From: Macrostomum hystrix
Taxonomy: Eukaryota; Animalia; Platyhelminthes
Assembly: GCA_950097015.1 (NCBI GenBank)
Contig: CATNEN010000038.1
Location: 19,468,001 to 19,532,000 of the forward strand
Direction: 5' to 3'
Length of the DNA stretch: 64,000 bases
Of the stretch, positions 361 through 64,000 are shown in pieces. The position numbers and the translations under genes are program-made. The notes beneath the pieces were generated by a model. It made no database searches. It saw only the letters and a list, made by a program, of their open reading frames with translations, and was not told the DNA's origin. Each line of letters opens with the position of its first letter. The stretch's first letter is position 1.

Positions 361-1199
361 CTACACTATTAGTGGAGATTTCAATCTCATAGTTTAGATT
401 GTGTCTCATAGAAAAACAGAACATTAGGAATTCCTGTTTTAATTGCATATTTGATCGGGCAAGGGATCTTGCTTGAAAATTTGTATACTTTCGCAGCGGC
501 TAATGTCTAAATGTAATCTGTATGGCACAGACAAAGCTTCAAGACAGAACAAATAGAAGATAGTAGAAGATGGAAAAACCCTACAGGATATTAAGGCAGT
601 AGAAGAAGAGGTCTTTTTGACTATTTTATTTAGCAATCATTCTGATTCAGACAAGAGAAAGGCGTGTGTATTTCCTGTTTATCTATAGAATCAGTACAGG
701 GAAGGGGCACGACTTGTGTGTCTGTGTGTGGTACATGTAGAAACCGGTTGTCTGTTGCACTTCTGCTTTGCAGGGGCAGGAAATAACGCACCACCTTGGA
801 TTAAAAGGTGCGATTGAATTTCTAGACTAGGGACTAGAAACACAGCTTCAATTGCAAGCCTCATATAAACACTTTCATGTCGACAAAAGTACAATAAAAC
901 CTTTACCCTCTAATTAATACTGTGGGTATTAAGGAAAATGGGATATTTAGAATACCTAGGGGATATTTTTTGAACTAAGGGGATATTTAGAATTCTGACG
1001 GGATAAGTTAGAAAAAAATTAAAGATATTTTGGCAATCGGGGTTCCGTTGTTTCGAAATAAAAAGCTTTTAAGCAACTAAAAAATTACTCTAAACTACAG
1101 ACACTTATCGATCACCAAAAATGTTATAGGGGCAGAAGTCGATAAGCCACAGTTGGCAAGCGATCATTGGCAGCAAAAACAGCAAAATTAGAGAATTAA

Positions 1200-7080: not shown

Positions 7081-7088
7081 ATAAAGTG
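7081..7088 (+). repeat. Left target-site duplication ATAAAGTG
   Basis: Identical to 32449-32456. It can be read as 9-bp TATAAAGTG if the terminal T at 32448 is given to the target. Confidence 0.9.
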
Positions 7089-7560
7089 ACGTCTATACTT
7101 CCAGTACCAGAACCAGTACCAGAACCAGTACCAGAAAAAAATTATGTTATAGCCAACAAAAAATCGACAAGCAACTAATAAAAAGACTTCTAACAGATGA
7201 AATACTTATATATCGGTCCGAAAATATCATTATTGAGAATAAAATTAATAAATATCGACGGACTTGCGCACAACACACAAAAAATCGTTTACTTTCACAA
7301 AACGTTTTCTAATATATGTTTTTCATAGAATAAAACAAATTTGCTCAACCAACTAAGTAAACGAATACAAAAAGCGGTTTACTAAATATCGCAACTACTA
7401 AAATCACAACTCAAAACTCACCTCATTAAATGTGTTTGTATAATTTATTATTTTTATAATCATCGTAAACTTCATCAAAAAAACTAAAAATATAACCTCA
7501 CTTTTGCGCTTCGCAGGATTATTACTCGTACATGATATACAGCTGAGAGCAATGATAAGG
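7089..7560 (+). repeat. Left unique terminal segment of the TIR (~470 bp), including 3 x 12-bp CCAGTACCAGAA
   Basis: Reverse complement of 31977-32448; one mismatch seen (about 7359 vs 32178). Confidence 0.93.
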
Positions 7561-10500
7561 AAGGAAACATTATCTGTGAACACGGCTGTAAAATTTCAGA
7601 GCCCTGACTAGTCGCGTCTCGGAGTTGTAGACCCTCGAGTCCCCCCCACTCTGATATCTCCCATTTTAAAAGTACTTTTCGTCACCTCACTGAATCTGGT
7701 GGTCAGACGAGGCTGAAAACTCAGATCTGGAAGGAAACATTATCTGTGAATACGGCTGTAAAATTTCAGAGCCCTGACTAGTCGCGTCTCGAAGTTGTAG
7801 ACCCTCGAGTCCCCCCCACTCTGATATCTCCCATTTTTAAAGTACTTTTCGTCACCTCACTGAATCTGGTGGTCAAAAAAAGCTGAAATCTCAGATCTGG
7901 AAGGAAACATTATCTGTGAACACGGCTGTAAAATTTCAGAGCCCTGACTAGTCGCGTCTCGGAGTTGTAGACCCTCGAGTCCCCCCCACTCTGATATCTC
8001 CCATTTTAAAAGTACTTTTCGTCACCTCACTGAATCTGGTGGTCAGACGAGGCTAAAAACTCAGATCTGGAAGGAAACATTATCTGTAAACACGGCTGTA
8101 AAATTTCAGAGCCCTGACTAGTCGCGTCTCGGAGTTGTAGACCCTCGAGTCCCCCCCACTCTGATATCTCCCATTTTAAAAGTACTTTTCGTCACCTCAC
8201 TGAATCTGGTGGTCAGACGAGGCTGAAAACTTAAATCTGGAAGGAAACATTATCTGTGAATACGGCTGTAAAATTTCAGAGCCCTGACTAGTCGCGTCTC
8301 GAAGTTGTAGACCCTCGAGTCCCCCCCACTCTGATATCTCCCATTTTAAAAGTACTTTTCGTCACCTCACTGAATCTGGTGGTCAAAAAAAGCTGAAATC
8401 TCAGATCTGGAAGGAAACATTATCTGTGAACACGGCTGTAAAATTTCAGAGCCCTGACTAGTCGCGTCTCGGAGTTGTAGACCCTCGAGTCCCCCCCACT
8501 CTGATATCTCCCATTTTAAAAGTACTTTTCGTCACCTCACTGAATCTGGTGGTCAGACGAGGCTGAAAACTTAAATCTGGAAGGAAACATTATCTGTGAA
8601 TACGGCTGTAAAATTTCAGAGCCCTGACTAGTCGCGTCTCGAAGTTGTAGACCCTCGAGTCCCCCCCCACTCTGATATCTCCCATTTTAAAAGTACTTTT
8701 CGTCACCTCACTGAATCTGGTGGTCAAAAAAAGCTGAAATCTCAGATCTGGAAGGAAACATTATCTGTGAACACGGCTGTAAAATTTCAGAGCCCTAACT
8801 AGTCGCGTCTCGGAGTTGTAGACCCTCGAGTCCCCCCCACTCTGATATCTCCCATTTTAAAAGTACTTTTCGTCACCTCACTGAATCTGGTGGTCAAAAA
8901 AAGCTGAAAACTCAGATCTGGAAGGAAACATTATCTGTGAACACGGCTGTAAAATTTCAGAGCCCTGACTAGTCGCGTCTCGGAGTTGTAGACCCTCGAG
9001 TCCCCCCCACTCTGATATCTCCCATTTTAAAAGTACTTTTCGTCACCTCACTGAATCTGGTGGTCAGACGAGGCTGAAAACTCAGATCTGGAAGGAAACA
9101 TTATCTGTGAACACGGCTGTAAAATTTCAGAGCCCTGACTAGTCGCGTCTCGGAGTTGTAGACCCTCGAGTCCCCCCCACTCTGATATCTCCCATTTTAA
9201 AAGTACTTTTCGTCACCTCACTGAATCTGGTGGTCAGACGAGGCTGAAAACTCAGATCTGGAAGGAAACATTATCTGTGAATACGGCTGTAAAATTTCAG
9301 AGCCCTGACTAGTCGCGTCTCGAAGTTGTAGACCCTCGAGTCCCCCCCACTCTGATATCTCCCATTTTTAAAGTACTTTTCGTCACCTCACTGAATCTGG
9401 TGGTCAAAAAAAGCTGAAATCTCAGATCTGGAAGGAAACATTATCTGTGAACACGGCTGTAAAATTTCAGAGCCCTGACTAGTCGCGTCTCGGAGTTGTA
9501 GACCCTCGAGTCCCCCCCACTCTGATATCTCCCATTTTAAAAGTACTTTTCGTCACCTCACTGAATCTGGTGGTCAGACGAGGCTGAAAACTTAAATCTG
9601 GAAGGAAACATTATCTGTGAATACGGCTGTAAAATTTCAGAGCCCTGACTAGTCGCGTCTCGAAGTTGTAGACCCTCGAGTCCCCCCCCACTCTGATATC
9701 TCCCATTTTAAAAGTACTTTTCGTCACCTCACTGAATCTGGTGGTCAAAAAAAGCTGAAATCTCAGATCTGGAAGGAAACATTATCTGTGAACACGGCTG
9801 TAAAATTTCAGAGCCCTGACTAGTCGCGTCTCGGAGTTGTAGACCCTCGAGTCCCCCCCACTCTGATATCTCCCATTTTAAAAGTACTTTTCGTCACCTC
9901 ACTGAATCTGGTGGTCAGACGAGGCTGAAAACACAGATCTGGAAGGAAACATTATCTGTGAATACGGCTGTAAAATTTCAGAGCCCTGACTAGTCGCGTC
10001 TCGAAGTTGTAGACCCTCGAGTCCCCCCCACTCTGATATCTCCCATTTTAAAAGTACTTTTCGTCACCTCACTGAATCTGGTGGTCAAAAAAAGCTGAAA
10101 TCTCAGATCTGGAAGGAAACATTATCTGTGAACACGTCTGTAAAATTTCAGAGCCCTGACTAGTCGCGTCTCGGAGTTGTAGACCCTCGAGTCCCCCCCA
10201 CTCTGATATCTCCCATTTTAAAAGTACTTTTCGTCACCTCACTGAATCTGGTGGTCAAAAAAAGCTGAAATCTCAGATCTGGAAGGAAACATTATCTGTG
10301 AACACGGCTGTAAAATTTCAGAGCCCTGACTAGTCGCGTCTCGGAGTTGTAGACCCTCGAGTCCCCCCACTCTGATATCTCCCATTTTAAAAGTACTTTT
10401 CGTCACCTCACTGAATCTGGTGGTCAAAAAAAGCTGAAAACTCAGATCTGGAAGGAAACATTATCTGTGAACACGGCTGTAAAATTTCAGAGCCCTGACT

Positions 10501-13500
10501 AGTCGCGTCTCGGAGTTGTAGACCCTCGAGTCCCCCCCACTCTGATATCTCCCATTTTAAAAGTACTTTTCGTCACCTCACTGAATCTGGTGGTCAGACG
10601 AGGCTGAAAACTCAGATCTGGAAGGAAACATTATCTGTGAATACGGCTGTAAAATTTCAGAGCCCTGACTAGTCGCGTCTCGAAGTTGTAGACCCTCGAG
10701 TCCCCCCCACTCTGATATCTCCCATTTTAAAAGTACTTTTCGTCACCTCACTGAATCTGGTGGTCAGACAAGGCTGAAAACTCAGATCTGGAAGGAAACA
10801 TTATCTGTGAATACGGCTGTAAAATTTCAGAGCCCTGACTAGTCGCGTCTCGAAGTTGTAGACCCTCGAGTCCCCCCCCACTCTGATATCTCCCATTTTA
10901 AAAGTACTTTTCGTCACCTCACTGAATCTGGTGGTCAAAAAAAGCTGAAATCTCAGATCTGGAAGGAAACATTATCTGTGAACACGGCTGTAAAATTTCA
11001 GAGCCCTGACTAGTCGCGTCTCGGAGTTGTAGACCCTCGAGTCCCCCCCACTCTGATATCTCCCATTTTAAAAGTACTTTTCGTCACCTCACTGAATCTG
11101 GTGGTCAGACGAGGCTGAAAACACAGATCTGGAAGGAAACATTATCTGTGAATACGGCTGTAAAATTTCAGAGCCCTGACTAGTCGCGTCTCGAAGTTGT
11201 AGACCCTCGAGTCCCCCCCACTCTGATATCTCCCATTTTAAAAGTACTTTTCGTCACCTCACTGAATCTGGTGGTCAAAAAAAGCTGAAATCTCAGATCT
11301 GGAAGGAAACATTATCTGTGAACACGTCTGTAAAATTTCAGAGCCCTGACTAGTCGCGTCTCGGAGTTGTAGACCCTCGAGTCCCCCCCACTCTGATATC
11401 TCCCATTTTAAAAGTACTTTTCGTCACCTCACTGAATCTGGTGGTCAAAAAAAGCTGAAATCTCAGATCTGGAAGGAAACATTATCTGTGAACACGGCTG
11501 TAAAATTTCAGAGCCCTGACTAGTCGCGTCTCGGAGTTGTAGACCCTCGAGTCCCCCCCACTCTGATATCTCCCATTTTAAAAGTACTTTTCGTCACCTC
11601 ACTGAATCTGGTGGTCAAAAAAAGCTGAAAACTCAGATCTGGAAGGAAACATTATCTGTGAACACGGCTGTAAAATTTCAGAGCCCTGACTAGTCGCGTC
11701 TCGGAGTTGTAGACCCTCGAGTCCCCCCCACTCTGATATCTCCCATTTTAAAAGTACTTTTCGTCACCTCACTGAATCTGGTGGTCAGACGAGGCTGAAA
11801 ACTCAGATCTGGAAGGAAACATTATCTGTGAATACGGCTGTAAAATTTCAGAGCCCTGACTAGTCGCGTCTCGAAGTTGTAGACCCTCGAGTCCCCCCCA
11901 CTCTGATATCTCCCATTTTAAAAGTACTTTTCGTCACCTCACTGAATCTGGTGGTCAGACAAGGCTGAAAACTCAGATCTGGAAGGAAACATTATCTGTG
12001 AACACGGCTGTAAAATTTCAGAGCCCTAACTAGTCGCGTCTCGGAGTTGTAGACCCTCGAGTCCCCCCCACTCTGATATCTCCCATTTTAAAAGTACTTT
12101 TCGTCACCTCACTGAATCTGGTGGTCAAAAAAAGCTGAAAACTCAGATCTGGAAGGAAACATTATCTGTGAACACGGCTGTAAAATTTCAGAGCCCTGAC
12201 TAGTCGCGTCTCGGAGTTGTAGACCCTCGAGTCCCCCCCACTCTGATATCTCCCATTTTAAAAGTACTTTTCGTCACCTCACTGAATCTGGTGGTCAGAC
12301 GAGGCTGAAAACTCAGATCTGGAAGGAAACATTATCTGTGAACACGGCTGTAAAATTTCAGAGCCCTGACTAGTCGCGTCTCGGAGTTGTAGACCCTCGA
12401 GTCCCCCCCACTCTGATATCTCCCATTTTAAAAGTACTTTTCGTCACCTCACTGAATCTGGTGGTCAGACGAGGCTGAAAACTCAGATCTGGAAGGAAAC
12501 ATTATCTGTGAATAACGTTCTAAAATTTCAGAGCCCTGACTAGTCGCGTCTCGAAGTTGTAGACCCTCGAGTCCCCCCCACTCTGATATCTCCCATTTTA
12601 AAAGTACTTTTCGTCACCCCACTGAATCTGGTGGTCAAAAAAAGCTGAAATCTCAGATCTGGAAGGAAACATTATCTGTGAACACGGCTGTAAAATTTCA
12701 GAGCCCTGACTAGTCGCGTCTCGGAGTTGTAGACCCTCGAGTCCCCCCCACTCTGATATCTCCCATTTTAAAAGTACTTTTCGTCACCTCACTGAATCTG
12801 GTGGTCAGACGAGGCTGAAAACTCAGATCTGGAAGGAAACATTATCTGTGAACACGGCTGTAAAATTTCAGAGCCCTGACTAGTCGCGTCTCGGAGTTGT
12901 AGACCCTCGAGTCCCCCCCACTCTGATATCTCCCATTTTAAAAGTACTTTTCGTCACCTCACTGAATCTGGTGGTCAGACGAGGCTGAAAACTCAGATCT
13001 GGAAGGAAACATTATCTGTGAACACGGCTGTAAAATTTCAGAGCCCTGACTAGTCGCGTCTCGGAGTTGTAGACCCTCGAGTCCCCCCACTCTGATATCT
13101 CCCATTTTAAAAGTACTTTTCGTCACCTCACTGAATCTGGTGGTCAAAAAAAGCTGAAAACTCAGATCTGGAAGGAAACATTATCTGTGAACACGGCTGT
13201 AAAATTTCAGAGCCCTGACTAGTCGCGTCTCGGAGTTGTAGACCCTCGAGTCCCCCCCACTCTGATATCTCCCATTTTAAAAGTACTTTTCGTCACCTCA
13301 CTGAATCTGGTGGTCAAAAAAAGCTGAAATCTCAGATCTGGAAGGAAACATTATCTGTGAATACGGCTGTAAAATTTCAGAGCCCTGACTAGTCGCGTCT
13401 CGAAGTTGTAGACCCTCGAGTCCCCCCCACTCTGATATCTCCCATTTTAAAAGTACTTTTCGTCACCTCACTGAATCTGGTGGTCAGACGAGGCTGAAAA

Positions 13501-16500
13501 CTTAAATCTGGAAGGAAACATTATCTGTGAATACGGCTGTAAAATTTCAGAGCCCTGACTAGTCGCGTCTCGAAGTTGTAGACCCTCGAGTCCCCCCCCA
13601 CTCTGATATCTCCCATTTTAAAAGTACTTTTCGTCACCTCACTGAATCTGGTGGTCAAAAAAAGCTGAAATCTCAGATCTGGAAGGAAACATTATCTGTG
13701 AACACGGCTGTAAAATTTCAGAGCCCTGACTAGTCGCGTCTCGGAGTTGTAGACCCTCGAGTCCCCCCCACTCTGATATCTCCCATTTTAAAAGTACTTT
13801 TCGTCACCTCACTGAATCTGGTGGTCAGACGAGGCTGAAAACTTAAATCTGGAAGGAAACATTATCTGTGAATACGGCTGTAAAATTTCAGAGCCCTGAC
13901 TAGTCGCGTCTCGAAGTTGTAGACCCTCGAGTCCCCCCCACTCTGATATCTCCCATTTTAAAAGTACTTTTCGTCACCTCACTGAATCTGGTGGTCAAAA
14001 AAAGCTGAAATCTCAGATCTGGAAGGAAACATTATCTGTGAACACGGCTGTAAAATTTCAGAGCCCTAACTAGTCGCGTCTCGGAGTTGTAGACCCTCGA
14101 GTCCCCCCCACTCTGATATCTCCCATTTTAAAAGTACTTTTCGTCACCTCACTGAATCTGGTGGTCAAAAAAAGCTGAAATCTCAGATCTGGAAGGAAAC
14201 ATTATCTGTGAACACGGCTGTAAAATTTCAGAGCCCTGACTAGTCGCGTCTCGGAGTTGTAGACCCTCGAGTCCCCCCCACTCTGATATCTCCCATTTTA
14301 AAAGTACTTTTCGTCACCTCACTGAATCTGGTGGTCAGACGAGGCTAAAAACTCAGATCTGGAAGGAAACATTATCTGTAAACACGGCTGTAAAATTTCA
14401 GAGCCCTGACTAGTCGCGTCTCGGAGTTGTAGACCCTCGAGTCCCCCCCACTCTGATATCTCCCATTTTAAAAGTACTTTTCGTCACCTCACTGAATCTG
14501 GTGGTCAGACGAGGCTGAAAACTTAAATCTGGAAGGAAACATTATCTGTGAATACGGCTGTAAAATTTCAGAGCCCTGACTAGTCGCGTCTCGAAGTTGT
14601 AGACCCTCGAGTCCCCCCCACTCTGATATCTCCCATTTTAAAAGTACTTTTCGTCACCTCACTGAATCTGGTGGTCAAAAAAAGCTGAAATCTCAGATCT
14701 GGAAGGAAACATTATCTGTGAACACGGCTGTAAAATTTCAGAGCCCTGACTAGTCGCGTCTCGGAGTTGTAGACCCTCGAGTCCCCCCCACTCTGATATC
14801 TCCCATTTTAAAAGTACTTTTCGTCACCTCACTGAATCTGGTGGTCAGACGAGGCTGAAAACTCAGATCTGGAAGGAAACATTATCTGTGAATACGGCTG
14901 TAAAATTTCAGAGCCCTGACTAGTCGCGTCTCGAAGTTGTAGACCCTCGAGTCCCCCCCACTCTGATATCTCCCATTTTAAAAGTACTTTTCGTCACCTC
15001 ACTGAATCTGGTGGTCAAAAAAAGCTGAAATCTCAGATCTGGAAGGAAACATTATCTGTGAACACGGCTGTAAAATTTCAGAGCCCTGACTAGTCGCGTC
15101 TCGGAGTTGTAGACCCTCGAGTCCCCCCCACTCTGATATCTCCCATTTTAAAAGTACTTTTCGTCACCTCACTGAATCTGGTGGTCAGACGAGGCTAAAA
15201 ACTCAGATCTGGAAGGAAACATTATCTGTAAACACGGCTGTAAAATTTCAGAGCCCTGACTAGTCGCGTCTCGGAGTTGTAGACCCTCGAGTCCCCCCCA
15301 CTCTGATATCTCCCATTTTAAAAGTACTTTTCGTCACCTCACTGAATCTGGTGGTCAGACGAGGCTGAAAACTTAAATCTGGAAGGAAACATTATCTGTG
15401 AACACGGCTGTAAAATTTCAGAGCCCTGACTAGTCGCGTCTCGGAGTTGTAGACCCTCGAGTCCCCCCCACTCTGATATCTCCCATTTTAAAAGTACTTT
15501 TCGTCACCTCACTGAATCTGGTGGTCAGACGAGGCTGAAAACTCAGATCTGGAAGGAAACATTATCTGTGAATACGGCTGTAAAATTTCAGAGCCCTGAC
15601 TAGTCGCGTCTCGAAGTTGTAGACCCTCGAGTCCCCCCCACTCTGATATCTCCCATTTTTAAAGTACTTTTCGTCACCTCACTGAATCTGGTGGTCAAAA
15701 AAAGCTGAAATCTCAGATCTGGAAGGAAACATTATCTGTGAACACGGCTGTAAAATTTCAGAGCCCTGACTAGTCGCGTCTCGGAGTTGTAGACCCTCGA
15801 GTCCCCCCCACTCTGATATCTCCCATTTTAAAAGTACTTTTCGTCACCTCACTGAATCTGGTGGTCAGACGAGGCTAAAAACTCAGATCTGGAAGGAAAC
15901 ATTATCTGTAAACACGGCTGTAAAATTTCAGAGCCCTGACTAGTCGCGTCTCGGAGTTGTAGACCCTCGAGTCCCCCCCACTCTGATATCTCCCATTTTA
16001 AAAGTACTTTTCGTCACCTCACTGAATCTGGTGGTCAGACGAGGCTGAAAACTTAAATCTGGAAGGAAACATTATCTGTGAATACGGCTGTAAAATTTCA
16101 GAGCCCTGACTAGTCGCGTCTCGAAGTTGTAGACCCTCGAGTCCCCCCCACTCTGATATCTCCCATTTTAAAAGTACTTTTCGTCACCTCACTGAATCTG
16201 GTGGTCAAAAAAAGCTGAAATCTCAGATCTGGAAGGAAACATTATCTGTGAACACGGCTGTAAAATTTCAGAGCCCTAACTAGTCGCGTCTCGGAGTTGT
16301 AGACCCTCGAGTCCCCCCCACTCTGATATCTCCCATTTTAAAAGTACTTTTCGTCACCTCACTGAATCTGGTGGTCAAAAAAAGCTGAAAACTCAGATCT
16401 GGAAGGAAACATTATCTGTGAACACGGCTGTAAAATTTCAGAGCCCTGACTAGTCGCGTCTCGGAGTTGTAGACCCTCGAGTCCCCCCCACTCTGATATC

Positions 16501-18303: not shown

Positions 18304-18674
18304 CGGCTTTTGGTATATTTTTCGTGAGCCCTCCTCTTTTTGAAACCAGGCTTGGGACTGGCTTAGGCAGAGTTTTTCACAAAGTCTTTAATACATTTTT
18401 AGTTTTAGTTTTTTGTAAGATTTTTGTTTTTTTAAGCGTTTTGTTGGTTTTAGTGTTTTTGTTTCACACAAAAGCCAATATTTACGAGTAGATAAGTCTT
18501 ACAATATTTTGCAGCTTAGATTATTCACAGTTTTACATGCAAACCGGTGGTATAATTTTTTACAGAATTGACTTGTCCTTATTAAAAAACTACAGATTTG
18601 ACATTTCATTTTTAAGCAAGTAGCTTTTAGTAATTAGTTTATTTTTTCACTGCACTCTTGGTGCATCCATCCAG

Positions 18675-21600: not shown

Positions 21601-23483
21601 TCACTCCCAGCATCAACACTCCCAGCGTCATCACTCCCAGCATCAACACTCCCAGCGTCATCACTCCCAGCTTCAACACTCCCAGCGTCATCACTCCCAG
21701 CTTCAACACTCCCAGCGTCATCACTCCCAGCTTCAACACTCCCAGCTTCAACACTCCCAGCGTCATCACTCCCAGCATCAACACTCCCAGCGTCATCACT
21801 CCCAGCATCAACACTCCCAGCTTCAACACTCCCAGCGTCATCACTCTCAGCGACATCACTCCCAGCGTCATCACTCCCAGCATCAACACTCCCAGCGTCA
21901 TCACTCCCAGCTTCAACACTCCCAGCGTCATCACTCCCAGCTTCAACACTCCCAGCGTCATCACTCCCAGCATCAACACTCCCAGCGTCATCACTCCCGG
22001 CATCAACACTCCCAGCGTCATCACTCCCAGCATCAACACTCCCAGCGTCATCACTCTCAGCGTCATCACTCTCAGCGTCATCACTCTCAGCGTCATCACT
22101 CCCAGCTTCAACACTCCCAGCATCATTACTCCCAGAATCACTCATATCATCACCACCAGCATCATCACTTCCACGAGCAGGCCCCACAGAAGCAGCAACA
22201 GCACCACGGGCAGGCACAGCAGAAGCAGCAACAGCACGACGGGCAGGCACAGCAGAAGCAGCAACAGCACGACGGGCAGGCAGAACAGAAGCAGCAACAG
22301 CACGACGGGCAGGCACAGCAGAAGCAGCAACAGCACCACGGGCAGGCACAGCAGAAGCAGCAACAGCACCACGGGCAGGCACTGCAGAAGCAGCAACAGC
22401 ACGACGGGCAGGCACAGCAGAAGCAGCAACAGCACCACGGGCAGGCACAGCAGAAGCAGCAACAGCACCACGGGCAGGCACAGCAGAAGCAGCAACAGCA
22501 CCACGGGCAGGCACAGCAGAAGCAGCAACAGCACGACGGGCAGGCAGAACAGAAGCAGCAACAGCACGACGGGCAGGCACAGCAGAAGCAGCAACAGCAC
22601 CACGGGCAGGCACTGCAGAAGCAGCAACAGCACGACGGGCAGGCACAGCAGAAGCAGCAACAGCACCACGGGCAGGCACAGCAGAAGCAGCAACAGCACC
22701 AGGGGCAGGCACAGCAGAAGCAGCAACAGCACGACGGGCAGGCACACCAGAAGCAGCAACAGCACCAGGGGCAGGCACAGCAGAAGCAGCAACAGCACGA
22801 CGGGCAGGCACAGCAGAAGCAGCAACAGCACCACGGGCAGGCACTGCAGAAGCAGCAACAGCACGACGGGCAGGCACAGCAGAAGCAGCAACAGCACCAC
22901 GGGCAGGCACAGCAGAAGCAGCAACAGCACCACGGGCAGGCACAGCAGAAGCAGCAACAGCACGACGGGCAGGCAGAACAGAAGCAGCAACAGCACGACG
23001 GGCAGGCACAGCAGAAGCAGCAACAGCACCACGGGCAGGCACAGCAGAAGCAGCAACAGCACCACGGGCAGGCACAGCAGAAGCAGCAACAGCACGACGG
23101 GCAGGCACAACAGAAGCAGCAACAGCACGACGGGCAGGCACAACAGAAGCAGCAACAGCACCTCGAGTGGATCTTACGACAGCAGATTTATGATAAGCAG
23201 TATTCTTACTTTTCGAAACAGAAGATTTTGACTTACCGAATATTTTACGCTGATAATACAGCCAGACAACTCGACGGTTTTCAATAGTGTTCTTTGCTGA
23301 AAGCTTGCTCAGAATTTGCCCGCAAGCACCATAGGGACAGCGAAATGATTTGCGAAGGCACTCATCACTATAGTCTTCAAAATATTCAGGCGACAGTTCA
23401 AAAAAAGAAATGCGTCGATTGTGGGTTGCTTTGCAAATGCAGAAAATTGAAAGTAAAGCAATGATGCGAAGACTGAAAATCAT
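18675..23483 (-). CDS. 1602-aa multidomain Mutator-type transposase: low-complexity N-terminus, Zn-binding DNA-binding domain, DDE core, Ulp1/C48 peptidase, PHD finger
   Basis: CQHPAC...HNH (WRKY/GCM1-like); LHLDATGS (D1), IVTDFSWAM (D2), ICTNH (CxxH), NSYVESYF (E). Ulp1 motifs SLEPGKWL, NDHFYLVYID, VLDT, QFDGHSCGVFV. PHD CVRC..WLQCDLCDSWLHHEC..CCC. AATAAA at 18643-18638, ~30 bp after the stop. True start codon uncertain. Confidence 0.88.
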   Translation of the reverse strand: MIFSLRIIALLSIFCICKATHNRRISFFELSPEYFEDYSDECLRKSFRCPYGACGQILSKLSAKNTIENRRVVWLYYQRKIFGKSKSSVSKSKNTAYHKSAVVRSTRGAVAASVVPARRAVAASVVPARRAVAASAVPARGAVAASAVPARGAVAASAVPARRAVAASVLPARRAVAASAVPARGAVAASAVPARGAVAASAVPARRAVAASAVPARGAVAASAVPARRAVAASAVPAPGAVAASGVPARRAVAASAVPAPGAVAASAVPARGAVAASAVPARRAVAASAVPARGAVAASAVPARRAVAASVLPARRAVAASAVPARGAVAASAVPARGAVAASAVPARGAVAASAVPARRAVAASAVPARGAVAASAVPARGAVAASAVPARRAVAASVLPARRAVAASAVPARRAVAASAVPARGAVAASVGPARGSDDAGGDDMSDSGSNDAGSVEAGSDDAESDDAESDDAESDDAGSVDAGSDDAGSVDAGSDDAGSVDAGSDDAGSVEAGSDDAGSVEAGSDDAGSVDAGSDDAGSDVAESDDAGSVEAGSVDAGSDDAGSVDAGSDDAGSVEAGSVEAGSDDAGSVEAGSDDAGSVEAGSDDAGSVDAGSDDAGSVDAGSDDAGSVDAGRDDAVSDDAGSDDMSASGSDDAGSDDSEVRDFTNAEVGADFESGESESMTNLIFHFRIAWRQWKSNFFIRRGEKMHSICQRTALWWLNCIRENYRQYCSLNVEASNCVLKFKNRYVNFPNLRALKPKYFVKQVALCQHPACKIVHDFRIIDFPTENEPVEVVVNSKGEKNHNHPTMSRMTPLESERIAKLLETEAPTDVHDRLLSEMTDKDIKENDFSRSKNLDAIRRVNAKRLVAAEERLHKNVEVEIAALQRILSETDTESKSIRGYIQAVSRHPFHVHLYLERQLRLVTSRPQCVLHLDATGSIFKRMNFAGSQIFLYSLTMPSDNGQTRGVPVAEMITSEHRTKSIQHFLFSVRADLGTLASSTIMSHDYLPAVIVTDFSWAMLHSVCQSFGTSLEQYLIDTHCALRMGKQIKYTIPFICTNHVIRAFINGIQLKSKTAEGKAMRELFISAFVFLLHQETFEAFETTLSLTVDTFLGQRDPKELRSAINNWETEPVDEEYLLYNDDEINNNKEEQAESSRFASLRESSPYIFLFKSRQASIDATDEPAGPFKSYYSPKLLVYLLKHWCSLAPLFCHFIGSIKSFRKNKSWFSNSYVESYFSDVKSRKTRFGKASRVNVSSFICGRLKYLKTRLTAFDIINKVGKATLSGRKRKHEDISFSREEWRRAERVSRSKYKRQRTESATKNRKQQGTAEREQVWCTRAGDFLTEFDRQSLEPGKWLSVGVVNSFIHLLCVCNPNSKAGHLPSSFFSCIRKGDSSAAIEMLRATVSNKCTRLICPILQNDHFYLVYIDTTRKELAVLDTKPISDKSIPKHFIKLWQNLIQSTASIREDMPEILGTYKNKSMLRSLQFDGHSCGVFVCLYAKVLVTSVDTEFRALCFPTTEGFLNRARICIWKDLERENEESTNSCVRCHEAEPSATGTWLQCDLCDSWLHHECASKDMHQRHASNGYVCCCAEYAATR
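21495..23165 (-). repeat. In-frame coding minisatellites in the transposase ORF: 30-bp unit (AVAASAVPAR[R/G]-type decapeptide, ~33 copies) then 15-bp unit (GSDDA/GSVEA)
   Basis: Direct periodicity; unit lengths are multiples of 3 and the frame stays open. Confidence 0.92.
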
Positions 23484-23546
23484 GGTTAAAAATACGCTCG
23501 TATATTGATATACTAGCAGACGATTGAAATCAGCTTTTCTGAAGGC

Positions 23547-23630
23547 TTTATACTCGAGAATTTATGCATGGCTTGTTCGGATAGGGATATGAGATAGCAA
23601 GCAAAAAGCATATAAAGCAGCTGATTGGAT
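23547..23630 (-). promoter_or_regulatory. Possible transposase promoter: CCAAT box (~23624-23628) and TATAAA (23552-23547)
   Basis: Minus strand reads ATCCAATCAG, then ~70 bp later GTATAAAG, ~65 bp before the ORF ATG. Motif match only. Confidence 0.3.
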
Positions 23631-24048
23631 AGCCCAGCTACTAGTGTAAAACAGAGCACGGTACACACCCAAGTACACTTATTTTGTCAGGCATTAAATT
23701 AGCAATAAAGCATAAGGACAAAGCACTAATAACTAAATGCAATAAAGGATAAGCAATCGACACTATAAAATTCGAAGCAACATGCACACATGAGGCTTGA
23801 AATCTCAACACTCAACTTCAAACGCTAAAGCCTCAAAAGCCGACAAACATAAGAGGGCATTAGTACTTCAAAGAATAAAAAACAATAGCAAAAACCAGAT
23901 CCAACATGCAAAATAAAGACCTATGTGCACGACAAGGCAAAAAATTATCCTGCATTACCAATTGCGCAATACATCTCAACACTTCACGCAACTCAACGCT
24001 GACAATACGCAGGCATCTCAGAGTGAGGGTGTTGTATTGTGCCCACTA

Positions 24049-27000
24049 TAAAATGGGAGATATCAGAGTGGGGGGGACTCGAGGGTCTACAACTCCGAGA
24101 CGCGACTAGTCAGGGCTCTGAAATTTTACAGCCGTGTTCACAGATAATGTTTCCTTCCAGATTTGAGTTTTCAGCCTCGTCTGACCACCAGATTCAGTGA
24201 GGTGACGAAAAGTACTTTTAAAATGGGAGATATCAGAGTGGGGGGGACTCGAGGGTCTACAACTTCGAGACGCGACTAGTCAGGGCTCTGAAATTTTAGA
24301 ACGTTATTCACAGATAATGTTTCCTTCCAGATCTGAGTTTTCAGCCTCGTCTGACCACCAGATTCAGTGAGGTGACGAAAAGTACTTTTAAAATGGGAGA
24401 TATCAGAGTGGGGGGGACTCGAGGGTCTACAACTCCGAGACGCGACTAGTCAGGGCTCTGAAATTTTACAGCCGTGTTCACAGATAATGTTTCCTTCCAG
24501 ATCTGAGTTTTCAGCCTCGTCTGACCACCAGATTCAGTGAGGTGACGAAAAGTACTTTTAAAATGGGAGATATCAGAGTGGGGGGGACTCGAGGGTCTAC
24601 AACTCCGAGACGCGACTAGTCAGGGCTCTGAAATTTTACAGCCGTGTTCACAGATAATGTTTCCTTCCAGATCTGAGTTTTCAGCTTTTTTTGACCACCA
24701 GATTCAGTGAGGTGACGAAAAGTACTTTTAAAATGGGAGATATCAGAGTGGGGGGGACTCGAGGGTCTACAACTCCGAGACGCGACTAGTTAGGGCTCTG
24801 AAATTTTACAGCCGTGTTCACAGATAATGTTTCCTTCCAGATCTGAGATTTCAGCTTTTTTTGACCACCAGATTCAGTGAGGTGACGAAAAGTACTTTTA
24901 AAATGGGAGATATCAGAGTGGGGGGGGACTCGAGGGTCTACAACTTCGAGACGCGACTAGTCAGGTCTCTGAAATTTTACAGCCGTATTCACAGATAATG
25001 TTTCCTTCCAGATTTAAGTTTTCAGCCTCGTCTGACCACCAGATTCAGTGAGGTGACGAAAAGTACTTTTAAAATGGGAGATATCAGAGTGGGGGGGACT
25101 CGAGGGTCTACAACTCCGAGACGCGACTAGTCAGGGCTCTGAAATTTTACAGCCGTGTTTACAGATAATGTTTCCTTCCAGATCTGAGTTTTTAGCCTCG
25201 TCTGACCACCAGATTCAGTGAGGTGACGAAAAGTACTTTTAAAATGGGAGATATCAGAGTGGGGGGGACTCGAGGGTCTACAACTCCGAGACGCGACTAG
25301 TCAGGGCTCTGAAATTTTACAGCCGTGTTCACAGATAATGTTTCCTTCCAGATCTGAGATTTCAGCTTTTTTTGACCACCAGATTCAGTGAGGTGACGAA
25401 AAGTACTTTTAAAATGGGAGATATCAGAGTGGGGGGGACTCGAGGGTCTACAACTTCGAGACGCGACTAGTCAGGGCTCTGAAATTTTACAGCCGTATTC
25501 ACAGATAATGTTTCCTTCCAGATTTAAGTTTTCAGCCTCGTCTGACCACCAGATTCAGTGAGGTGACGAAAAGTACTTTTAAAATGGGAGATATCAGAGT
25601 GGGGGGGACTCGAGGGTCTACAACTCCGAGACGCGACTAGTCAGGGCTCTGAAATTTTACAGCCGTGTTTACAGATAATGTTTCCTTCCAGATCTGAGTT
25701 TTTAGCCTCGTCTGACCACCAGATTCAGTGAGGTGACGAAAAGTACTTTTAAAATGGGAGATATCAGAGTGGGGGGGACTCGAGGGTCTACAACTCCGAG
25801 ACGCGACTAGTCAGGGCTCTGAAATTTTACAGCCGTGTTCACAGATAATGTTTCCTTCCAGATCTGAGATTTCAGCTTTTTTTGACCACCAGATTCAGTG
25901 AGGTGACGAAAAGTACTTTAAAAATGGGAGATATCAGAGTGGGGGGGACTCGAGGGTCTACAACTTCGAGACGCGACTAGTCAGGGCTCTGAAATTTTAC
26001 AGCCGTATTCACAGATAATGTTTCCTTCCAGATCTGAGTTTTCAGCCTCGTCTGACCACCAGATTCAGTGAGGTGACGAAAAGTACTTTTAAAATGGGAG
26101 ATATCAGAGTGGGGGGGACTCGAGGGTCTACAACTCCGAGACGCGACTAGTCAGGGCTCTGAAATTTTACAGCCGTGTTCACAGATAATGTTTCCTTCCA
26201 GATCTGAGTTTTCAGCCTCGTCTGACCACCAGATTCAGTGAGGTGACGAAAAGTACTTTTAAAATGGGAGATATCAGAGTGGGGGGGACTCGAGGGTCTA
26301 CAACTCCGAGACGCGACTAGTCAGGGCTCTGAAATTTTACAGCCGTGTTCACAGATAATGTTTCCTTCCAGATCTGAGTTTTCAGCTTTTTTTGACCACC
26401 AGATTCAGTGAGGTGACGAAAAGTACTTTTAAAATGGGAGATATCAGAGTGGGGGGGACTCGAGGGTCTACAACTCCGAGACGCGACTAGTTAGGGCTCT
26501 GAAATTTTACAGCCGTGTTCACAGATAATGTTTCCTTCCAGATCTGAGTTTTCAGCCTCGTCTGACCACCAGATTCAGTGAGGTGACGAAAAGTACTTTT
26601 AAAATGGGAGATATCAGAGTGGGGGGGACTCGAGGGTCTACAACTTCGAGACGCGACTAGTCAGGGCTCTGAAATTTTACAGCCGTATTCACAGATAATG
26701 TTTCCTTCCAGATCTGAGTTTTCAGCCTCGTCTGACCACCAGATTCAGTGAGGTGACGAAAAGTACTTTTAAAATGGGAGATATCAGAGTGGGGGGGACT
26801 CGAGGGTCTACAACTCCGAGACGCGACTAGTCAGGGCTCTGAAATTTTACAGCCGTGTTCACAGATAATGTTTCCTTCCAGATCTGAGTTTTCAGCCTCG
26901 TCTGACCACCAGATTCAGTGAGGTGACGAAAAGTACTTTTAAAATGGGAGATATCAGAGTGGGGGGGACTCGAGGGTCTACAACTCCGAGACGCGACTAG

Positions 27001-30000
27001 TCAGGGCTCTGAAATTTTACAGCCGTGTTCACAGATAATGTTTCCTTCCAGATCTGAGTTTTCAGCTTTTTTTGACCACCAGATTCAGTGAGGTGACGAA
27101 AAGTACTTTTAAAATGGGAGATATCAGAGTGGGGGGGACTCGAGGGTCTACAACTCCGAGACGCGACTAGTTAGGGCTCTGAAATTTTACAGCCGTGTTC
27201 ACAGATAATGTTTCCTTCCAGATCTGAGTTTTCAGCCTCGTCTGACCACCAGATTCAGTGAGGTGACGAAAAGTACTTTTAAAATGGGAGATATCAGAGT
27301 GGGGGGGACTCGAGGGTCTACAACTTCGAGACGCGACTAGTCAGGGCTCTGAAATTTTACAGCCGTATTCACAGATAATGTTTCCTTCCAGATCTGAGAT
27401 TTCAGCTTTTTTTGACCACCAGATTCAGTGAGGTGACGAAAAGTACTTTTAAAATGGGAGATATCAGAGTGGGGGGGACTCGAGGGTCTACAACTCCGAG
27501 ACGCGACTAGTCAGGGCTCTGAAATTTTACAGCCGTGTTCACAGATAATGTTTCCTTCCAGATCTGAGTTTTCAGCTTTTTTTGACCACCAGATTCAGTG
27601 AGGTGACGAAAAGTACTTTTAAAATGGGAGATATCAGAGTGGGGGGACTCGAGGGTCTACAACTCCGAGACGCGACTAGTCAGGGCTCTGAAATTTTACA
27701 GCCGTGTTCACAGATAATGTTTCCTTCCAGATCTGAGTTTTCAGCCTCGTCTGACCACCAGATTCAGTGAGGTGACGAAAAGTACTTTTAAAATGGGAGA
27801 TATCAGAGTGGGGGGGACTCGAGGGTCTACAACTCCGAGACGCGACTAGTCAGGGCTCTGAAATTTTACAGCCGTGTTCACAGATAATGTTTCCTTCCAG
27901 ATCTGAGTTTTCAGCCTCGTCTGACCACCAGATTCAGTGAGGTGACGAAAAGTACTTTTAAAATGGGAGATATCAGAGTGGGGGGGACTCGAGGGTCTAC
28001 AACTCCGAGACGCGACTAGTCAGGGCTCTGAAATTTTACAGCCGTGTTCACAGATAATGTTTCCTTCCAGATCTGAGATTTCAGCTTTTTTTGACCACCA
28101 GATTCAGTGAGGTGACGAAAAGTACTTTTAAAATGGGAGATATCAGAGTGGGGGGGACTCGAGGGTCTACAACTTCGAGACGCGACTAGTCAGGGCTCTG
28201 AAATTTTACAGCCGTATTCACAGATAATGTTTCCTTCCAGATTTAAGTTTTCAGCCTCGTCTGACCACCAGATTCAGTGAGGTGACGAAAAGTACTTTAA
28301 AAATGGGAGATATCAGAGTGGGGGGGACTCGAGGGTCTACAACTCCGAGACGCGACTAGTTAGGGCTCTGAAATTTTACAGCCGTGTTCACAGATAATGT
28401 TTCCTTCCAGATCTGAGTTTTCAGCCTTGTCTGACCACCAGATTCAGTGAGGTGACGAAAAGTACTTTTAAAATGGGAGATATCAGAGTGGGGGGGACTC
28501 GAGGGTCTACAACTCCGAGACGCGACTAGTCAGGGCTCTGAAATTTTACAGCCGTGTTCACAGATAATGTTTCCTTCCAGATCTGAGTTTTCAGCTTTTT
28601 TTGACCACCAGATTCAGTGAGGTGACGAAAAGTACTTTTAAAATGGGAGATATCAGAGTGGGGGGACTCGAGGGTCTACAACTCCGAGACGCGACTAGTC
28701 AGGGCTCTGAAATTTTACAGCCGTGTTCACAGATAATGTTTCCTTCCAGATCTGAGTTTTCAGCCTCGTCTGACCACCAGATTCAGTGAGGTGACGAAAA
28801 GTACTTTTAAAATGGGAGATATCAGAGTGGGGGGGACTCGAGGGTCTACAACTCCGAGACGCGACTAGTCAGGGCTCTGAAATTTTACAGACGTGTTCAC
28901 AGATAATGTTTCCTTCCAGATCTGAGTTTTCAGCCTTGTCTGACCACCAGATTCAGTGAGGTGACGAAAAGTACTTTTAAAATGGGAGATATCAGAGTGG
29001 GGGGGACTCGAGGGTCTACAACTCCGAGACGCGACTAGTCAGGGCTCTGAAATTTTACAGCCGTGTTCACAGATAATGTTTCCTTCCAGATCTGAGTTTT
29101 CAGCTTTTTTTGACCACCAGATTCAGTGAGGTGACGAAAAGTACTTTTAAAATGGGAGATATCAGAGTGGGGGGACTCGAGGGTCTACAACTCCGAGACG
29201 CGACTAGTCAGGGCTCTGAAATTTTACAGCCGTGTTCACAGATAATGTTTCCTTCCAGATCTGAGTTTTCAGCCTCGTCTGACCACCAGATTCAGTGAGG
29301 TGACGAAAAGTACTTTTAAAATGGGAGATATCAGAGTGGGGGGGACTCGAGGGTCTACAACTCCGAGACGCGACTAGTCAGGGCTCTGAAATTTTACAGA
29401 CGTGTTCACAGATAATGTTTCCTTCCAGATCTGAGATTTCAGCTTTTTTTGACCACCAGATTCAGTGAGGTGACGAAAAGTACTTTTAAAATGGGAGATA
29501 TCAGAGTGGGGGGGACTCGAGGGTCTACAACTTCGAGACGCGACTAGTCAGGGCTCTGAAATTTTACAGCCGTATTCACAGATAATGTTTCCTTCCAGAT
29601 CTGTGTTTTCAGCCTCGTCTGACCACCAGATTCAGTGAGGTGACGAAAAGTACTTTTAAAATGGGAGATATCAGAGTGGGGGGGACTCGAGGGTCTACAA
29701 CTCCGAGACGCGACTAGTCAGGGCTCTGAAATTTTACAGCCGTGTTCACAGATAATGTTTCCTTCCAGATCTGAGATTTCAGCTTTTTTTGACCACCAGA
29801 TTCAGTGAGGTGACGAAAAGTACTTTTAAAATGGGAGATATCAGAGTGGGGGGGGACTCGAGGGTCTACAACTTCGAGACGCGACTAGTCAGGGCTCTGA
29901 AATTTTACAGCCGTATTCACAGATAATGTTTCCTTCCAGATTTAAGTTTTCAGCCTCGTCTGACCACCAGATTCAGTGAGGTGACGAAAAGTACTTTTAA

Positions 30001-31978
30001 AATGGGAGATATCAGAGTGGGGGGGACTCGAGGGTCTACAACTCCGAGACGCGACTAGTCAGGGCTCTGAAATTTTACAGCCGTGTTCACAGATAATGTT
30101 TCCTTCCAGATCTGAGATTTCAGCTTTTTTTGACCACCAGATTCAGTGAGGTGACGAAAAGTACTTTAAAAATGGGAGATATCAGAGTGGGGGGGACTCG
30201 AGGGTCTACAACTTCGAGACGCGACTAGTCAGGGCTCTGAAATTTTACAGCCGTATTCACAGATAATGTTTCCTTCCAGATCTGAGTTTTCAGCCTCGTC
30301 TGACCACCAGATTCAGTGAGGTGACGAAAAGTACTTTTAAAATGGGAGATATCAGAGTGGGGGGGACTCGAGGGTCTACAACTCCGAGACGCGACTAGTC
30401 AGGGCTCTGAAATTTTACAGCCGTGTTCACAGATAATGTTTCCTTCCAGATCTGAGTTTTCAGCCTCGTCTGACCACCAGATTCAGTGAGGTGACGAAAA
30501 GTACTTTTAAAATGGGAGATATCAGAGTGGGGGGGACTCGAGGGTCTACAACTCCGAGACGCGACTAGTCAGGGCTCTGAAATTTTACAGCCGTGTTCAC
30601 AGATAATGTTTCCTTCCAGATCTGAGTTTTCAGCTTTTTTTGACCACCAGATTCAGTGAGGTGACGAAAAGTACTTTTAAAATGGGAGATATCAGAGTGG
30701 GGGGGACTCGAGGGTCTACAACTCCGAGACGCGACTAGTTAGGGCTCTGAAATTTTACAGCCGTGTTCACAGATAATGTTTCCTTCCAGATCTGAGATTT
30801 CAGCTTTTTTTGACCACCAGATTCAGTGAGGTGACGAAAAGTACTTTTAAAATGGGAGATATCAGAGTGGGGGGGGACTCGAGGGTCTACAACTTCGAGA
30901 CGCGACTAGTCAGGGCTCTGAAATTTTACAGCCGTATTCACAGATAATGTTTCCTTCCAGATTTAAGTTTTCAGCCTCGTCTGACCACCAGATTCAGTGA
31001 GGTGACGAAAAGTACTTTTAAAATGGGAGATATCAGAGTGGGGGGGACTCGAGGGTCTACAACTCCGAGACGCGACTAGTCAGGGCTCTGAAATTTTACA
31101 GCCGTGTTCACAGATAATGTTTCCTTCCAGATCTGAGATTTCAGCTTTTTTTGACCACCAGATTCAGTGAGGTGACGAAAAGTACTTTTAAAATGGGAGA
31201 TATCAGAGTGGGGGGGACTCGAGGGTCTACAACTTCGAGACGCGACTAGTCAGGGCTCTGAAATTTTACAGCCGTATTCACAGATAATGTTTCCTTCCAG
31301 ATTTAAGTTTTCAGCCTCGTCTGACCACCAGATTCAGTGAGGTGACGAAAAGTACTTTTAAAATGGGAGATATCAGAGTGGGGGGGACTCGAGGGTCTAC
31401 AACTCCGAGACGCGACTAGTCAGGGCTCTGAAATTTTACAGCCGTGTTTACAGATAATGTTTCCTTCCAGATCTGAGTTTTTAGCCTCGTCTGACCACCA
31501 GATTCAGTGAGGTGACGAAAAGTACTTTTAAAATGGGAGATATCAGAGTGGGGGGGACTCGAGGGTCTACAACTCCGAGACGCGACTAGTCAGGGCTCTG
31601 AAATTTTACAGCCGTGTTCACAGATAATGTTTCCTTCCAGATCTGAGATTTCAGCTTTTTTTGACCACCAGATTCAGTGAGGTGACGAAAAGTACTTTAA
31701 AAATGGGAGATATCAGAGTGGGGGGGACTCGAGGGTCTACAACTTCGAGACGCGACTAGTCAGGGCTCTGAAATTTTACAGCCGTATTCACAGATAATGT
31801 TTCCTTCCAGATCTGAGTTTTCAGCCTCGTCTGACCACCAGATTCAGTGAGGTGACGAAAAGTACTTTTAAAATGGGAGATATCAGAGTGGGGGGGACTC
31901 GAGGGTCTACAACTCCGAGACGCGACTAGTCAGGGCTCTGAAATTTTACAGCCGTGTTCACAGATAATGTTTCCTTCC
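24049..31978 (-). repeat. Right arm satellite array, same 170-bp unit inverted, ~47 copies
   Basis: Reverse complement of the left array unit with the same variant set. Confidence 0.97.
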
Positions 31979-32448
31979 TTATCATTGCTCTCAGCTGTAT
32001 ATCATGTACGAGTAATAATCCTGCGAAGCGCAAAAGTGAGGTTATATTTTTAGTTTTTTTGATGAAGTTTACGATGATTATAAAAATAATAAATTATACA
32101 AACACATTTAATGAGGTGAGTTTTGAGTTGTGATTTTAGTAGTTGCGATATTTAGTAAACCGCTTTTTGTATTCGTTAACTTAGTTGGTTGAGCAAATTT
32201 GTTTTATTCTATGAAAAACATATATTAGAAAACGTTTTGTGAAAGTAAACGATTTTTTGTGTGTTGTGCGCAAGTCCGTCGATATTTATTAATTTTATTC
32301 TCAATAATGATATTTTCGGACCGATATATAAGTATTTCATCTGTTAGAAGTCTTTTTATTAGTTGCTTGTCGATTTTTTGTTGGCTATAACATAATTTTT
32401 TTCTGGTACTGGTTCTGGTACTGGTTCTGGTACTGGAAGTATAGACGT
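31979..32448 (-). repeat. Right unique terminal segment of the TIR
   Basis: Reverse complement of 7089-7558; ends ...TACTGGAAGTATAGACGT. Confidence 0.93.
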
Positions 32449-32456
32449 ATAAAGTG
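32449..32456 (+). repeat. Right target-site duplication ATAAAGTG
   Basis: Identical to 7081-7088. Confidence 0.9.

Positions 32457-46039: not shown

Positions 46040-63767
<17,728 letters not shown>

Positions 63768-63805: not shown

Positions 63806-64000
<195 letters not shown>

Follow-up and report, generated by a model that had tools for sequence, protein, structure and literature searches.

A 64,000-bp stretch of the genome of the flatworm Macrostomum hystrix (assembly GCA_950097015.1, contig CATNEN010000038.1, positions 19,468,001 to 19,532,000; hereafter the window) contains a mobile element of 25,360 bp at window positions 7089-32448. We consider this element to be an intact, probably autonomous and recently active cut-and-paste foldback transposon that encodes a Mutator/IS256-like (Rehavkus-like) DDE transposase together with an Ulp1/SENP protease and a PHD-like finger, and we assign this reading a probability of about 0.85. 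Related copies were sought in the genome assembly (220 Mb in 42 contigs), whose contigs are designated by C-numbers below; coordinates are collected in Table 1.

Element structure and family copies

The end sequences and an 8-bp target-site duplication (TSD), ATAAAGTG, which is perfect at both ends, fix both borders of the element. At the left junction the flank GATAAGTT is followed by the TSD and the element start ACGTCTATACTTCC, while at the right junction the element end GGAAGTATAGACGT is followed by the TSD and the flank TGTTAAAA. A duplication of 9 bp is excluded at this site, since the extra base mismatches on both sides. The right end is the exact mirror of the left end, ACGTCTATACTTCC(CCAGTACCAGAA)x3, and when the two arms are compared from the outside inwards their outermost 3,169 bp align without gaps and with one mismatch. 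This symmetric stretch consists of a 470-bp unique terminus and the 15 outermost monomers of a 170-bp repeat, which was delimited both with Tandem Repeats Finder (left arm: 63.2 copies, period 170 bp, 96% matches; right arm: 46.6 copies of the reverse-complement unit) and by anchoring on a monomer motif. Long inverted termini that are largely composed of tandem repeats and bounded by a TSD, as seen here, characterise the foldback class.

The original prediction, which was made from the letters of the window, had described perfect inverted ends with an 8-bp direct flanking repeat, unique termini of about 470 bp, about 63 plus about 47 inverted copies of a 170-bp unit making up about 74% of the element, and a 5.7-kb core with a single open reading frame (ORF). 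Measurement bore out each of these points: ATAAAGTG is read at both junctions, each terminus is 470 bp long, motif anchoring gives 64 plus 47 monomers, the arrays account for 73.6% of the element ((10,745 + 7,930) / 25,360), and the core (18304-24048) spans 5,745 bp with one frame of 1,602 aa.

Our survey of the assembly found 42 matches to the 470-bp terminus, many at 98-100% identity, and 31 matches to the transposase/core region. About ten full-length copies of the family are dispersed over the contigs, in addition to short derivatives without the core. Six elements, including the window copy, are closed by perfect 8-bp TSDs that are all different; the search for other copies with different TSDs, proposed along with the original prediction, hence yielded five other insertions, each with its own duplication (Table 1). 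A seventh TSD, AGCTAAGG, is common to the left end of a C27 copy and the right end of a C28 copy. C27:945880-968104 and C28:2-35114 each hold their own transposase core beside AGCTAAGG, and the C27 version (96.5% identity, 41 gaps, stops) resembles a low-quality contig end or a haplotig in a long inverted array. The two represent one insertion, either split or represented twice by the assembly. The seven TSDs together are 71% A+T, in what is a small sample.

An arms-only derivative, as is typical of the foldback class, is represented by the 2,939-bp element at C38:17425444-17428382, in which about 5 monomers directly abut about 6.5 inverted ones between the two termini, with no core. Further short derivatives measure about 0.9-1.6 kb. 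Two other full-length copies have unlike flanking 8-mers, namely C11:2382089-2398774 (TAACAAGA vs CTACAAAT), whose transposase is intact, and C38:3595139-3616298 (AACCAAAC vs GTTCAGCC); their mismatched ends could have arisen by recombination between elements or by inversion across the arms. A degraded copy at C38:10.87M is adjoined by a tRNA-like match of 32.1 bits, just above the Rfam cut-off.

A 941-codon region of the gene is present in 10 copies, is open throughout in seven of them (7/10), and separates the copies into two subfamilies about 2% apart. Four copies of the window's subfamily differ by 0-2 substitutions over the 2,826 bp of this region (99.9% identical), the broken C24 copy among them showing a 1-bp gap as well; two copies of the other subfamily are identical there. 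Between the subfamilies we counted 31 synonymous and 25 nonsynonymous differences, which gives a ratio of nonsynonymous to synonymous rates (dN/dS) of 0.22 (binomial p = 3.5e-8). The initial part of the catalytic core (residues 187-479) is free of amino-acid differences. As judged from these substitutions, the transposase is under purifying selection. The dN/dS value and the near-identical copies therefore show that the gene was functional during the diversification of the family and that the latest transpositions were very recent. The element had been proposed to be young and autonomous; the 0-2 substitutions and the single 1-bp gap agree with the former, and the near-identical intact transposase genes, with their signs of purifying selection, make the latter very probable.

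We also observed the core at about 98% identity and high depth among Logan contigs, in sequencing runs whose labels name two organisms from a single study. The run of the second organism shares almost all differences of the first organism's collapsed contig (window 18304-21500), and the 98% element in it may reflect either a very close species, a recent transfer, or a mixed label or sample.

The arms evolve differently from the gene. In the window copy the monomers sort into 27 sequence types, the first 15 of which, read from the outside inwards, follow the same order in both arms (ABCDEFGHAABFGIE), while beyond monomer 15 the arms diverge in monomer order and number, though blocks are reused. 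Arm lengths of the sister copies were taken from match coordinates, and their monomer order was compared over the outer ~8 monomers per arm. Arms measure about 3-11 kb in the window's subfamily and reach about 26 kb in C24:6.02M, and copies with near-identical coding sequences differ both in arm length and in monomer order, implying that the arrays are remodelled much faster than bases are substituted. The outer eight monomers are in the same order at C24:6.02M and C28, and the outer order of the C24:1.89M left arm equals that of the C31 left arm. Since this order is common to separate insertion sites, the arrays must have been copied or moved together with the ends; thus the 170-bp arrays travel with the element, as had been supposed. 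Mirror symmetry of the outer arms is present in the window copy and in C24:6.02M and absent in C24:1.89M, C31 and C34, which argues for occasional conversion between arms rather than a habit of the assembler.

Genome-wide, a 22-nt monomer motif (<=2 mismatches) is found 568 times forward and 551 times in reverse, 1,119 in all, and its reversed control pattern has no match. The summed arm lengths of the family, from match coordinates, account for roughly a thousand monomers, and the repeat totals about 190 kb, less than 0.1% of the genome. Among the array matches listed (150 of 211 and 100 of 1,119), all lie inside family elements or at a family fragment at C24:2.11M, with no block of the repeat outside the family. 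Nearly all genomic 170-bp monomers hence appear to sit in the arms of this family.

Transposase protein and classification

The N-terminal ~660 codons of the ORF consist of 30-nt and 33-nt minisatellites, whose units encode DAGSVEAGSD-like and AVAASAVPARG-like repeats. Because long ORFs run through this stretch in each of the three minus-strand frames, an open frame across it is no evidence of coding, and therefore only the last 941 codons are counted as gene evidence. The open frame varies between 1,373 and 1,748 aa among copies, so that the minisatellite repeat number varies in frame; long acidic N-terminal repeats are also seen in some distant relatives.

A Pfam scan of the 941 aa at E <= 0.1 found no domain, while a profile search of 1.84 billion representative proteins recovered 7,014 relatives at E <= 0.001 (1,207 at E <= 1e-30); the family is thus large, and its core is not covered by any Pfam model. 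Among its conserved motifs are D277 (LHLDATGS), D357 (VTDFSWA), C399xxH402 and E576 (SNxxVENWF..K583), a D277/D357/C399xxH402/E576 pattern that we take to be that of Mutator-type DDE transposases. IS256 is the bacterial kin of Mutator, and Mutator transposases possess an N-terminal zinc module of the WRKY/GCM1/FLYWCH type. Yuan and Wessler reportedly defined in 2011 a Mutator DDE core with C/DxxH after the second Asp and with the Glu in N-x-x-E-x-x-x-x-x-x-K. Both the C/DxxH and the N-x-x-E...K motifs accompany the DDE core in the 44 family sequences that we aligned, in which D277, D357, C399xxH402 and N572..E576..K583 are invariant or nearly so. The TSDs likewise fall within the Mutator range of 8-11 bp, being 8 bp in the six two-ended elements and in C27/C28.

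In structural comparison, the best match of the AlphaFold model (predicted local distance difference test, pLDDT, 78.6) is ISCth4 of the IS256 family (Z 11.6, 237 residues), with which the P element (Z 10.9 over 245 residues) is tied, and Hermes comes next (Z 8.7). Membership in hAT was considered and rejected. In the ESM Atlas, MULE families form the nearest clusters (0.89-0.94), and the ten clusters listed are mostly MULE or SWIM. The N-terminal module (four beta-strands, pLDDT 82.7) matches AFT2 (Z 5.7) and WRKY33 (Z 5.5), values that are tied with unrelated folds and not significant. A cluster look-up of database relatives returned unnamed proteins, one of them from Mytilus coruscus, and a further profile search, in a word-indexed protein database, contributed next to nothing.

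The C-terminal part carries the additional domains. SENP2 (1tgz) is matched at E 7.3e-7, with HFYLV/HWSLV, LD/LD and QFDGHSCG/QLNGSDCG aligned, and the predicted fold of this region is close to SENP3, SENP5 and Ulp1 (VIA-align Z 20-22; root-mean-square deviation 2.4-2.6 over 184-197 residues; Foldseek target-normalised TM-score 0.7-0.8). The Ulp1/SENP protease is hence intact as far as its sequence tells, and PF02902 (C48) is matched in relatives and not in the window protein. The final finger has a C4HC3-like motif, as would be expected of the PHD finger of Rehavkus (PDB matches weak, E 0.03-0.8). A Pfam scan of the 44 family members at E <= 0.001 found PHD in nine (9/44), Peptidase_C48 in eight (8/44), and OTU, UCH or YqaJ in single members. 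The presence of C48, OTU or UCH at the same end of relatives suggests that these may be interchangeable deubiquitinase/deSUMOylase modules.

Several results weigh against the assignment as a recently active, Rehavkus-like member of the Mutator group. The Pfam MULE model PF10551 has no match in the window protein (E <= 0.1) or in 43 relatives (E <= 0.001), the gap between ISCth4 and the P element (Z 11.6 vs 10.9) is within the tie margin, and the TSD is 8 bp as against the 9 bp published for Rehavkus. Flank searches of the assembly revealed no empty site and no insertion polymorphism, and matches in two sequencing runs of uncertain type are limited to contigs of about 200 nt, giving no RNA evidence. 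Moreover, the arm lengths are those of the assembly, where two contigs share one of the copies and one contig end is rich in errors. Finally, a comparison of the terminus with the monomer motif found no common motif and only chance 8-mers. The monomers as transposase-binding sites, an idea cited for other foldback elements (bioRxiv 10.1101/2024.12.02.626372), would for that reason be without support here as extra binding sites.

Because the 9-bp duplication of Rehavkus is not found, we class the element as Rehavkus-like within the Mutator group and keep Zisupton and P as minor rivals. Zisupton transposases can carry an Ulp1-like domain. The Zisupton/KDZ superfamily, with its 8-bp TSDs and often large multi-domain transposases, would accommodate the exact 8-bp TSD of all six two-ended elements (Zisupton makes 8 bp; PMC12730594), but the KDZ model PF18758, which has been used to recognise animal Zisupton (PMC9297572), matches 0/44 members at E <= 0.001 and the window protein not at all at E <= 0.1. 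As the ESM Atlas clusters are also mostly MULE/SWIM and the best structural match is an IS256-family transposase, the Zisupton alternative, which the original prediction had wanted compared, appears very improbable.

Membership in the P superfamily, to which the Drosophila foldback element Galileo belongs, is hardly more plausible. P elements make 8-bp and Galileo 7-bp TSDs, and Galileo has long inverted ends with tandem repeats; the P element transposase is also second in structure, tied with ISCth4 (Foldseek E 7.5e-4). However, no THAP or P-element Pfam domain occurs in the 44 members, the N-terminal module is a beta-sheet Cys/His module with weak WRKY/AFT2 matches and not THAP-like, and the listed ESM Atlas neighbours are mostly MULE. 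Least probable of all, in our view, is an assembly artefact, by which collapsed or mis-joined satellite would surround a transposase gene or the 3.2-kb symmetry would be false. Long near-identical inverted repeats are difficult to assemble, and one family copy is indeed divided between C27 and C28, with an error-rich C27 version; still, the layout of terminus, array, core, inverted array and terminus has been assembled independently at about ten loci with unlike arm lengths and monomer orders, six elements are closed by matching 8-bp TSDs that a mis-join would not give, the arms are unlike in C24a (C24:1.89M), C31 and C34, and forward and reverse monomer motifs are balanced genome-wide (568 vs 551). 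A host gene lying between two satellites was likewise rejected, being at odds with the ~10 dispersed copies with TSDs. The Rehavkus-like foldback transposon therefore remains the reading that we adopt.

A twister-like motif and a possible mechanism

A candidate ribozyme resembling twister-P1 (RF03160) lies on the transposase strand between the stop codon, from which it is 296 nt away, and the left arm, which begins 22 nt further on. Its score is below the gathering threshold (40.4 vs 67.2 bits) because one stem of the model is absent; the model aligned full length with its conserved stretches retained, and the conserved core nucleotides as well as the P1, P2 and P4 pairings that mark a twister are kept. 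All copies examined carry the motif at this position, and so does a sister family with a transposase DNA identity of only 67%; in the latter, a 60-nt motif core is near-invariant while the flanks have diverged, and the sole change in the P1 stem turns an A-C mismatch into an A-U pair.

Genome-wide, at least 44 twister-P1-like motifs were detected, all below the Rfam cut-off, compared with none in 14 control genomes. Several of them follow sister transposase genes on the same strand at a distance of 0.25-0.7 kb (C10:2.685M, C38:2.154M and C7:13.36M), although the proteins are only 37-39% identical. This conservation down to distant sisters argues, on the grounds of sequence, for a function of the motif. 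About 30 further motifs, some in groups of near-identical 57-nt versions, were seen without a transposase match, and may belong to non-autonomous elements or to other families. A metagenome scan gave 17 short loci; no foldback arms were seen in the five larger loci scanned and no twister motif in eight, the contigs being too short to indicate absence.

We propose that the transposase would bind the unique 470-bp termini, perhaps at the (CCAGTACCAGAA)x3 block, and cut at ACGTCTATAC..., and insertion generates the 8-bp staggered-cut duplications. The arrays may then grow, shrink and homogenise via unequal exchange, slippage and arm-to-arm conversion, possibly in the repair of the gap left after excision. 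For the protease and the PHD finger, possible targets are host chromatin or SUMO marks, either where the element leaves or where it inserts. Given the AATAAA at 32 nt past the stop codon, the ribozyme may act on read-through transcripts: it would cleave those that pass the 3' end of the transposase before they enter the left arm, keeping arm sequence off the mRNA. A tentative extension, which we hold to be possible though rather doubtful, is that the twister serves as an insulator, cutting read-through 22 nt before the arm so that the mRNA is free of arm pairing that triggers silencing and the polymerase stops before the array. In that case a twister ribozyme in a DNA transposon would have a defined biological role, and foldback elements would have a means of coping with arms of tens of kilobases. 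A search of open-access papers found no twister in the 3' untranslated region (UTR) of a DNA-transposon transposase before an inverted satellite arm.

Such an element would probably be broken up by repeat annotators into two satellites and a gene, a point of the original prediction that stands. On either side of the element (window 1-7000 and 32500-64000), unrelated minisatellites are unusually abundant; their periods range from 15 to 50 nt and their arrays from 0.3 to 2.5 kb, for instance at 52893-55392 (period 30), 42611-44354 (period 40) and 63808-64000 ((AGAC)n). The sequence at 6695-6803 belongs to a dispersed repeat of about 110 bp, of which hundreds of copies exist with about 85% identity.

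Table 1. Features of the element in the window, its relatives with perfect duplications, and related motifs elsewhere in the assembly
Feature	Position	Strand or length	Basis or remark
Left TSD copy ATAAAGTG	7081-7088		sequence reading
Left unique terminus, 470 bp	7089-7558	+	reverse complement of 31979-32448, one mismatch
(CCAGTACCAGAA)x3 block in left terminus, after ACGTCTATACTTCC	7101-7136	+	sequence reading
Left arm, 64 monomers of 170-bp repeat	7559-18303	+	Tandem Repeats Finder, motif anchoring
Twister-P1-like motif (RF03160), candidate ribozyme	18325-18379	-	40.4 bits, E 1.7e-7 in 501-nt search
AATAAA hexamer, possible poly(A) signal	18638-18643	-	hexamer match only, 32 nt past stop codon
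ORF, 1,602 aa; conserved transposase is last 941 aa (18675-21500)	18675-23483	-	ORF reading
PHD-like C-terminal zinc finger	18705-18851	-	weak PDB PHD matches, E 0.03-0.8
Ulp1/SENP (C48) cysteine protease domain	18960-19448	-	His, Asp, Gln, Cys positions aligned
DDE (RNase H-like) catalytic core	19596-20813	-	conserved columns, structural matches
Beta-sheet Cys/His module (C82, C111, C116, H146), putative DNA-binding zinc module	21021-21443	-	conserved columns
In-ORF minisatellites: 30-nt units 21498-22173, 33-nt units 22171-23162	21498-23162	-	Tandem Repeats Finder
Unique region of 565 bp, right arm to first ATG; presumed promoter/5' UTR	23484-24048	-	position only
Right arm, 47 monomers of 170-bp repeat, inverted relative to left	24049-31978	-	Tandem Repeats Finder, motif anchoring
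Right unique terminus, 470 bp	31979-32448	-	reverse complement of left terminus
Right TSD copy ATAAAGTG	32449-32456		sequence reading
Family copy	C34:1953527-1973722	20.2 kb	TSD TAGAAAAC, perfect 8 bp
Family copy	C31:1843245-1863784	20.5 kb	TSD AATATTAA, perfect 8 bp
Family copy	C24:1887897-1903506	15.6 kb	TSD CCATATTT, perfect 8 bp
Family copy	C24:6018911-6059057	40.1 kb	TSD TAAGTTAG, perfect 8 bp
Coreless derivative	C38:17425444-17428382	2,939 bp	TSD GCCTATTG, perfect 8 bp
Motif near sister transposase	C10:2684653-2684707	same strand as transposase gene	RF03160 scan
Motif near sister transposase	C38:2157461-2157515	same strand as transposase gene	RF03160 scan
Motif near sister transposase	C7:13363833-13363884	same strand as transposase gene	RF03160 scan

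Comparison with known systems

It has long been known that tandem repeats can originate inside transposon ends and spread by way of foldback elements, of which autonomous, intact and recently active examples are rare; Rehavkus itself has been described almost only in Repbase. The family described here offers near-identical intact copies with arms of about 3 to about 26 kb, in which monomer order differs despite gene differences of 0-2 bases. These unlike arrays around near-identical genes therefore constitute a natural experiment on the expansion, shrinkage and homogenisation of satellites in a mobile unit. The family also joins a SUMO-type protease, a PHD-like finger and a twister-like ribozyme motif in one element. 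Mutator-like transposases are associated with a C48 (Ulp1-like) protease in the KI-MULEs of plants, often as a separate or captured gene. Here, by contrast, the C48 protease is fused in frame to the transposase and the PHD-like finger.

The architecture as such is not new. The element had been proposed as an undescribed system, a claim that has to be given up in view of the published Rehavkus-type foldback elements with satellite-built inverted termini, and the accompanying statement that known elements have much shorter arms is contradicted by TfSat06 of Tribolium freemani, which builds Rehavkus-like inverted termini 'sometimes over 11 kb long' (10.1101/2024.12.02.626372). Rehavkus-3_TC of Tribolium has up to 50 monomers per terminus (bioRxiv 10.1101/2024.12.02.626372), and Rehavkus-1_TC is a 9.5-kb element with a 164-bp repeat in its inverted termini (PMC10218199). 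Hence the foldback architecture and its link to satellites are already known, arms of the size of the window copy included. We came across no published account of the flatworm host, of the 8-bp TSD or of the twister-like motif that separates the stop codon from the left arm.

Among the known systems, Rehavkus (Tribolium castaneum, T. freemani, Helobdella) resembles the flatworm element in its single transposase ORF with a PHD finger, its minisatellites and its inverted termini with tandem repeats; it has been characterised as Mutator-related, with 9-bp TSDs, a PHD finger, long inverted termini and minisatellites (PMC6446971, Table 1). The flatworm element differs by its 8-bp TSD and by its host, as published accounts place Rehavkus in arthropods and annelids. 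It also differs by arms of up to about 26 kb, by the twister-like motif, and by the Ulp1/SENP protease in its transposase, which the Rehavkus papers do not mention, the systems being compared by description and not by sequence.

FB/FB-NOF of Drosophila melanogaster and Tetris of D. virilis share with the flatworm family both the foldback architecture and coreless derivatives (here 2.9 kb), and in all of them the tandem repeats of the inverted ends seed satellite-like arrays. Tetris, whose repeats are 220 bp long and whose TSDs measure 8-10 bp (vs 8 bp here), is likewise assigned to Mutator and has no known autonomous copy (PMC4079207), whereas about seven copies of the flatworm family have an intact transposase. 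The D. virilis repeats also form kilobase-size arrays, while for the flatworm repeat no large array outside the elements is seen among the matches listed.

As for the ribozyme, twisters occur in non-long-terminal-repeat (non-LTR) retrotransposons of Schistosoma mansoni (PMC8501958), which provide a likeness in that a twister-class motif resides in a flatworm mobile element and is multiplied with it. In S. mansoni, however, the twister serves retrotransposition through an RNA intermediate, whereas here the motif is placed in the 3' UTR of the transposase of a DNA transposon.

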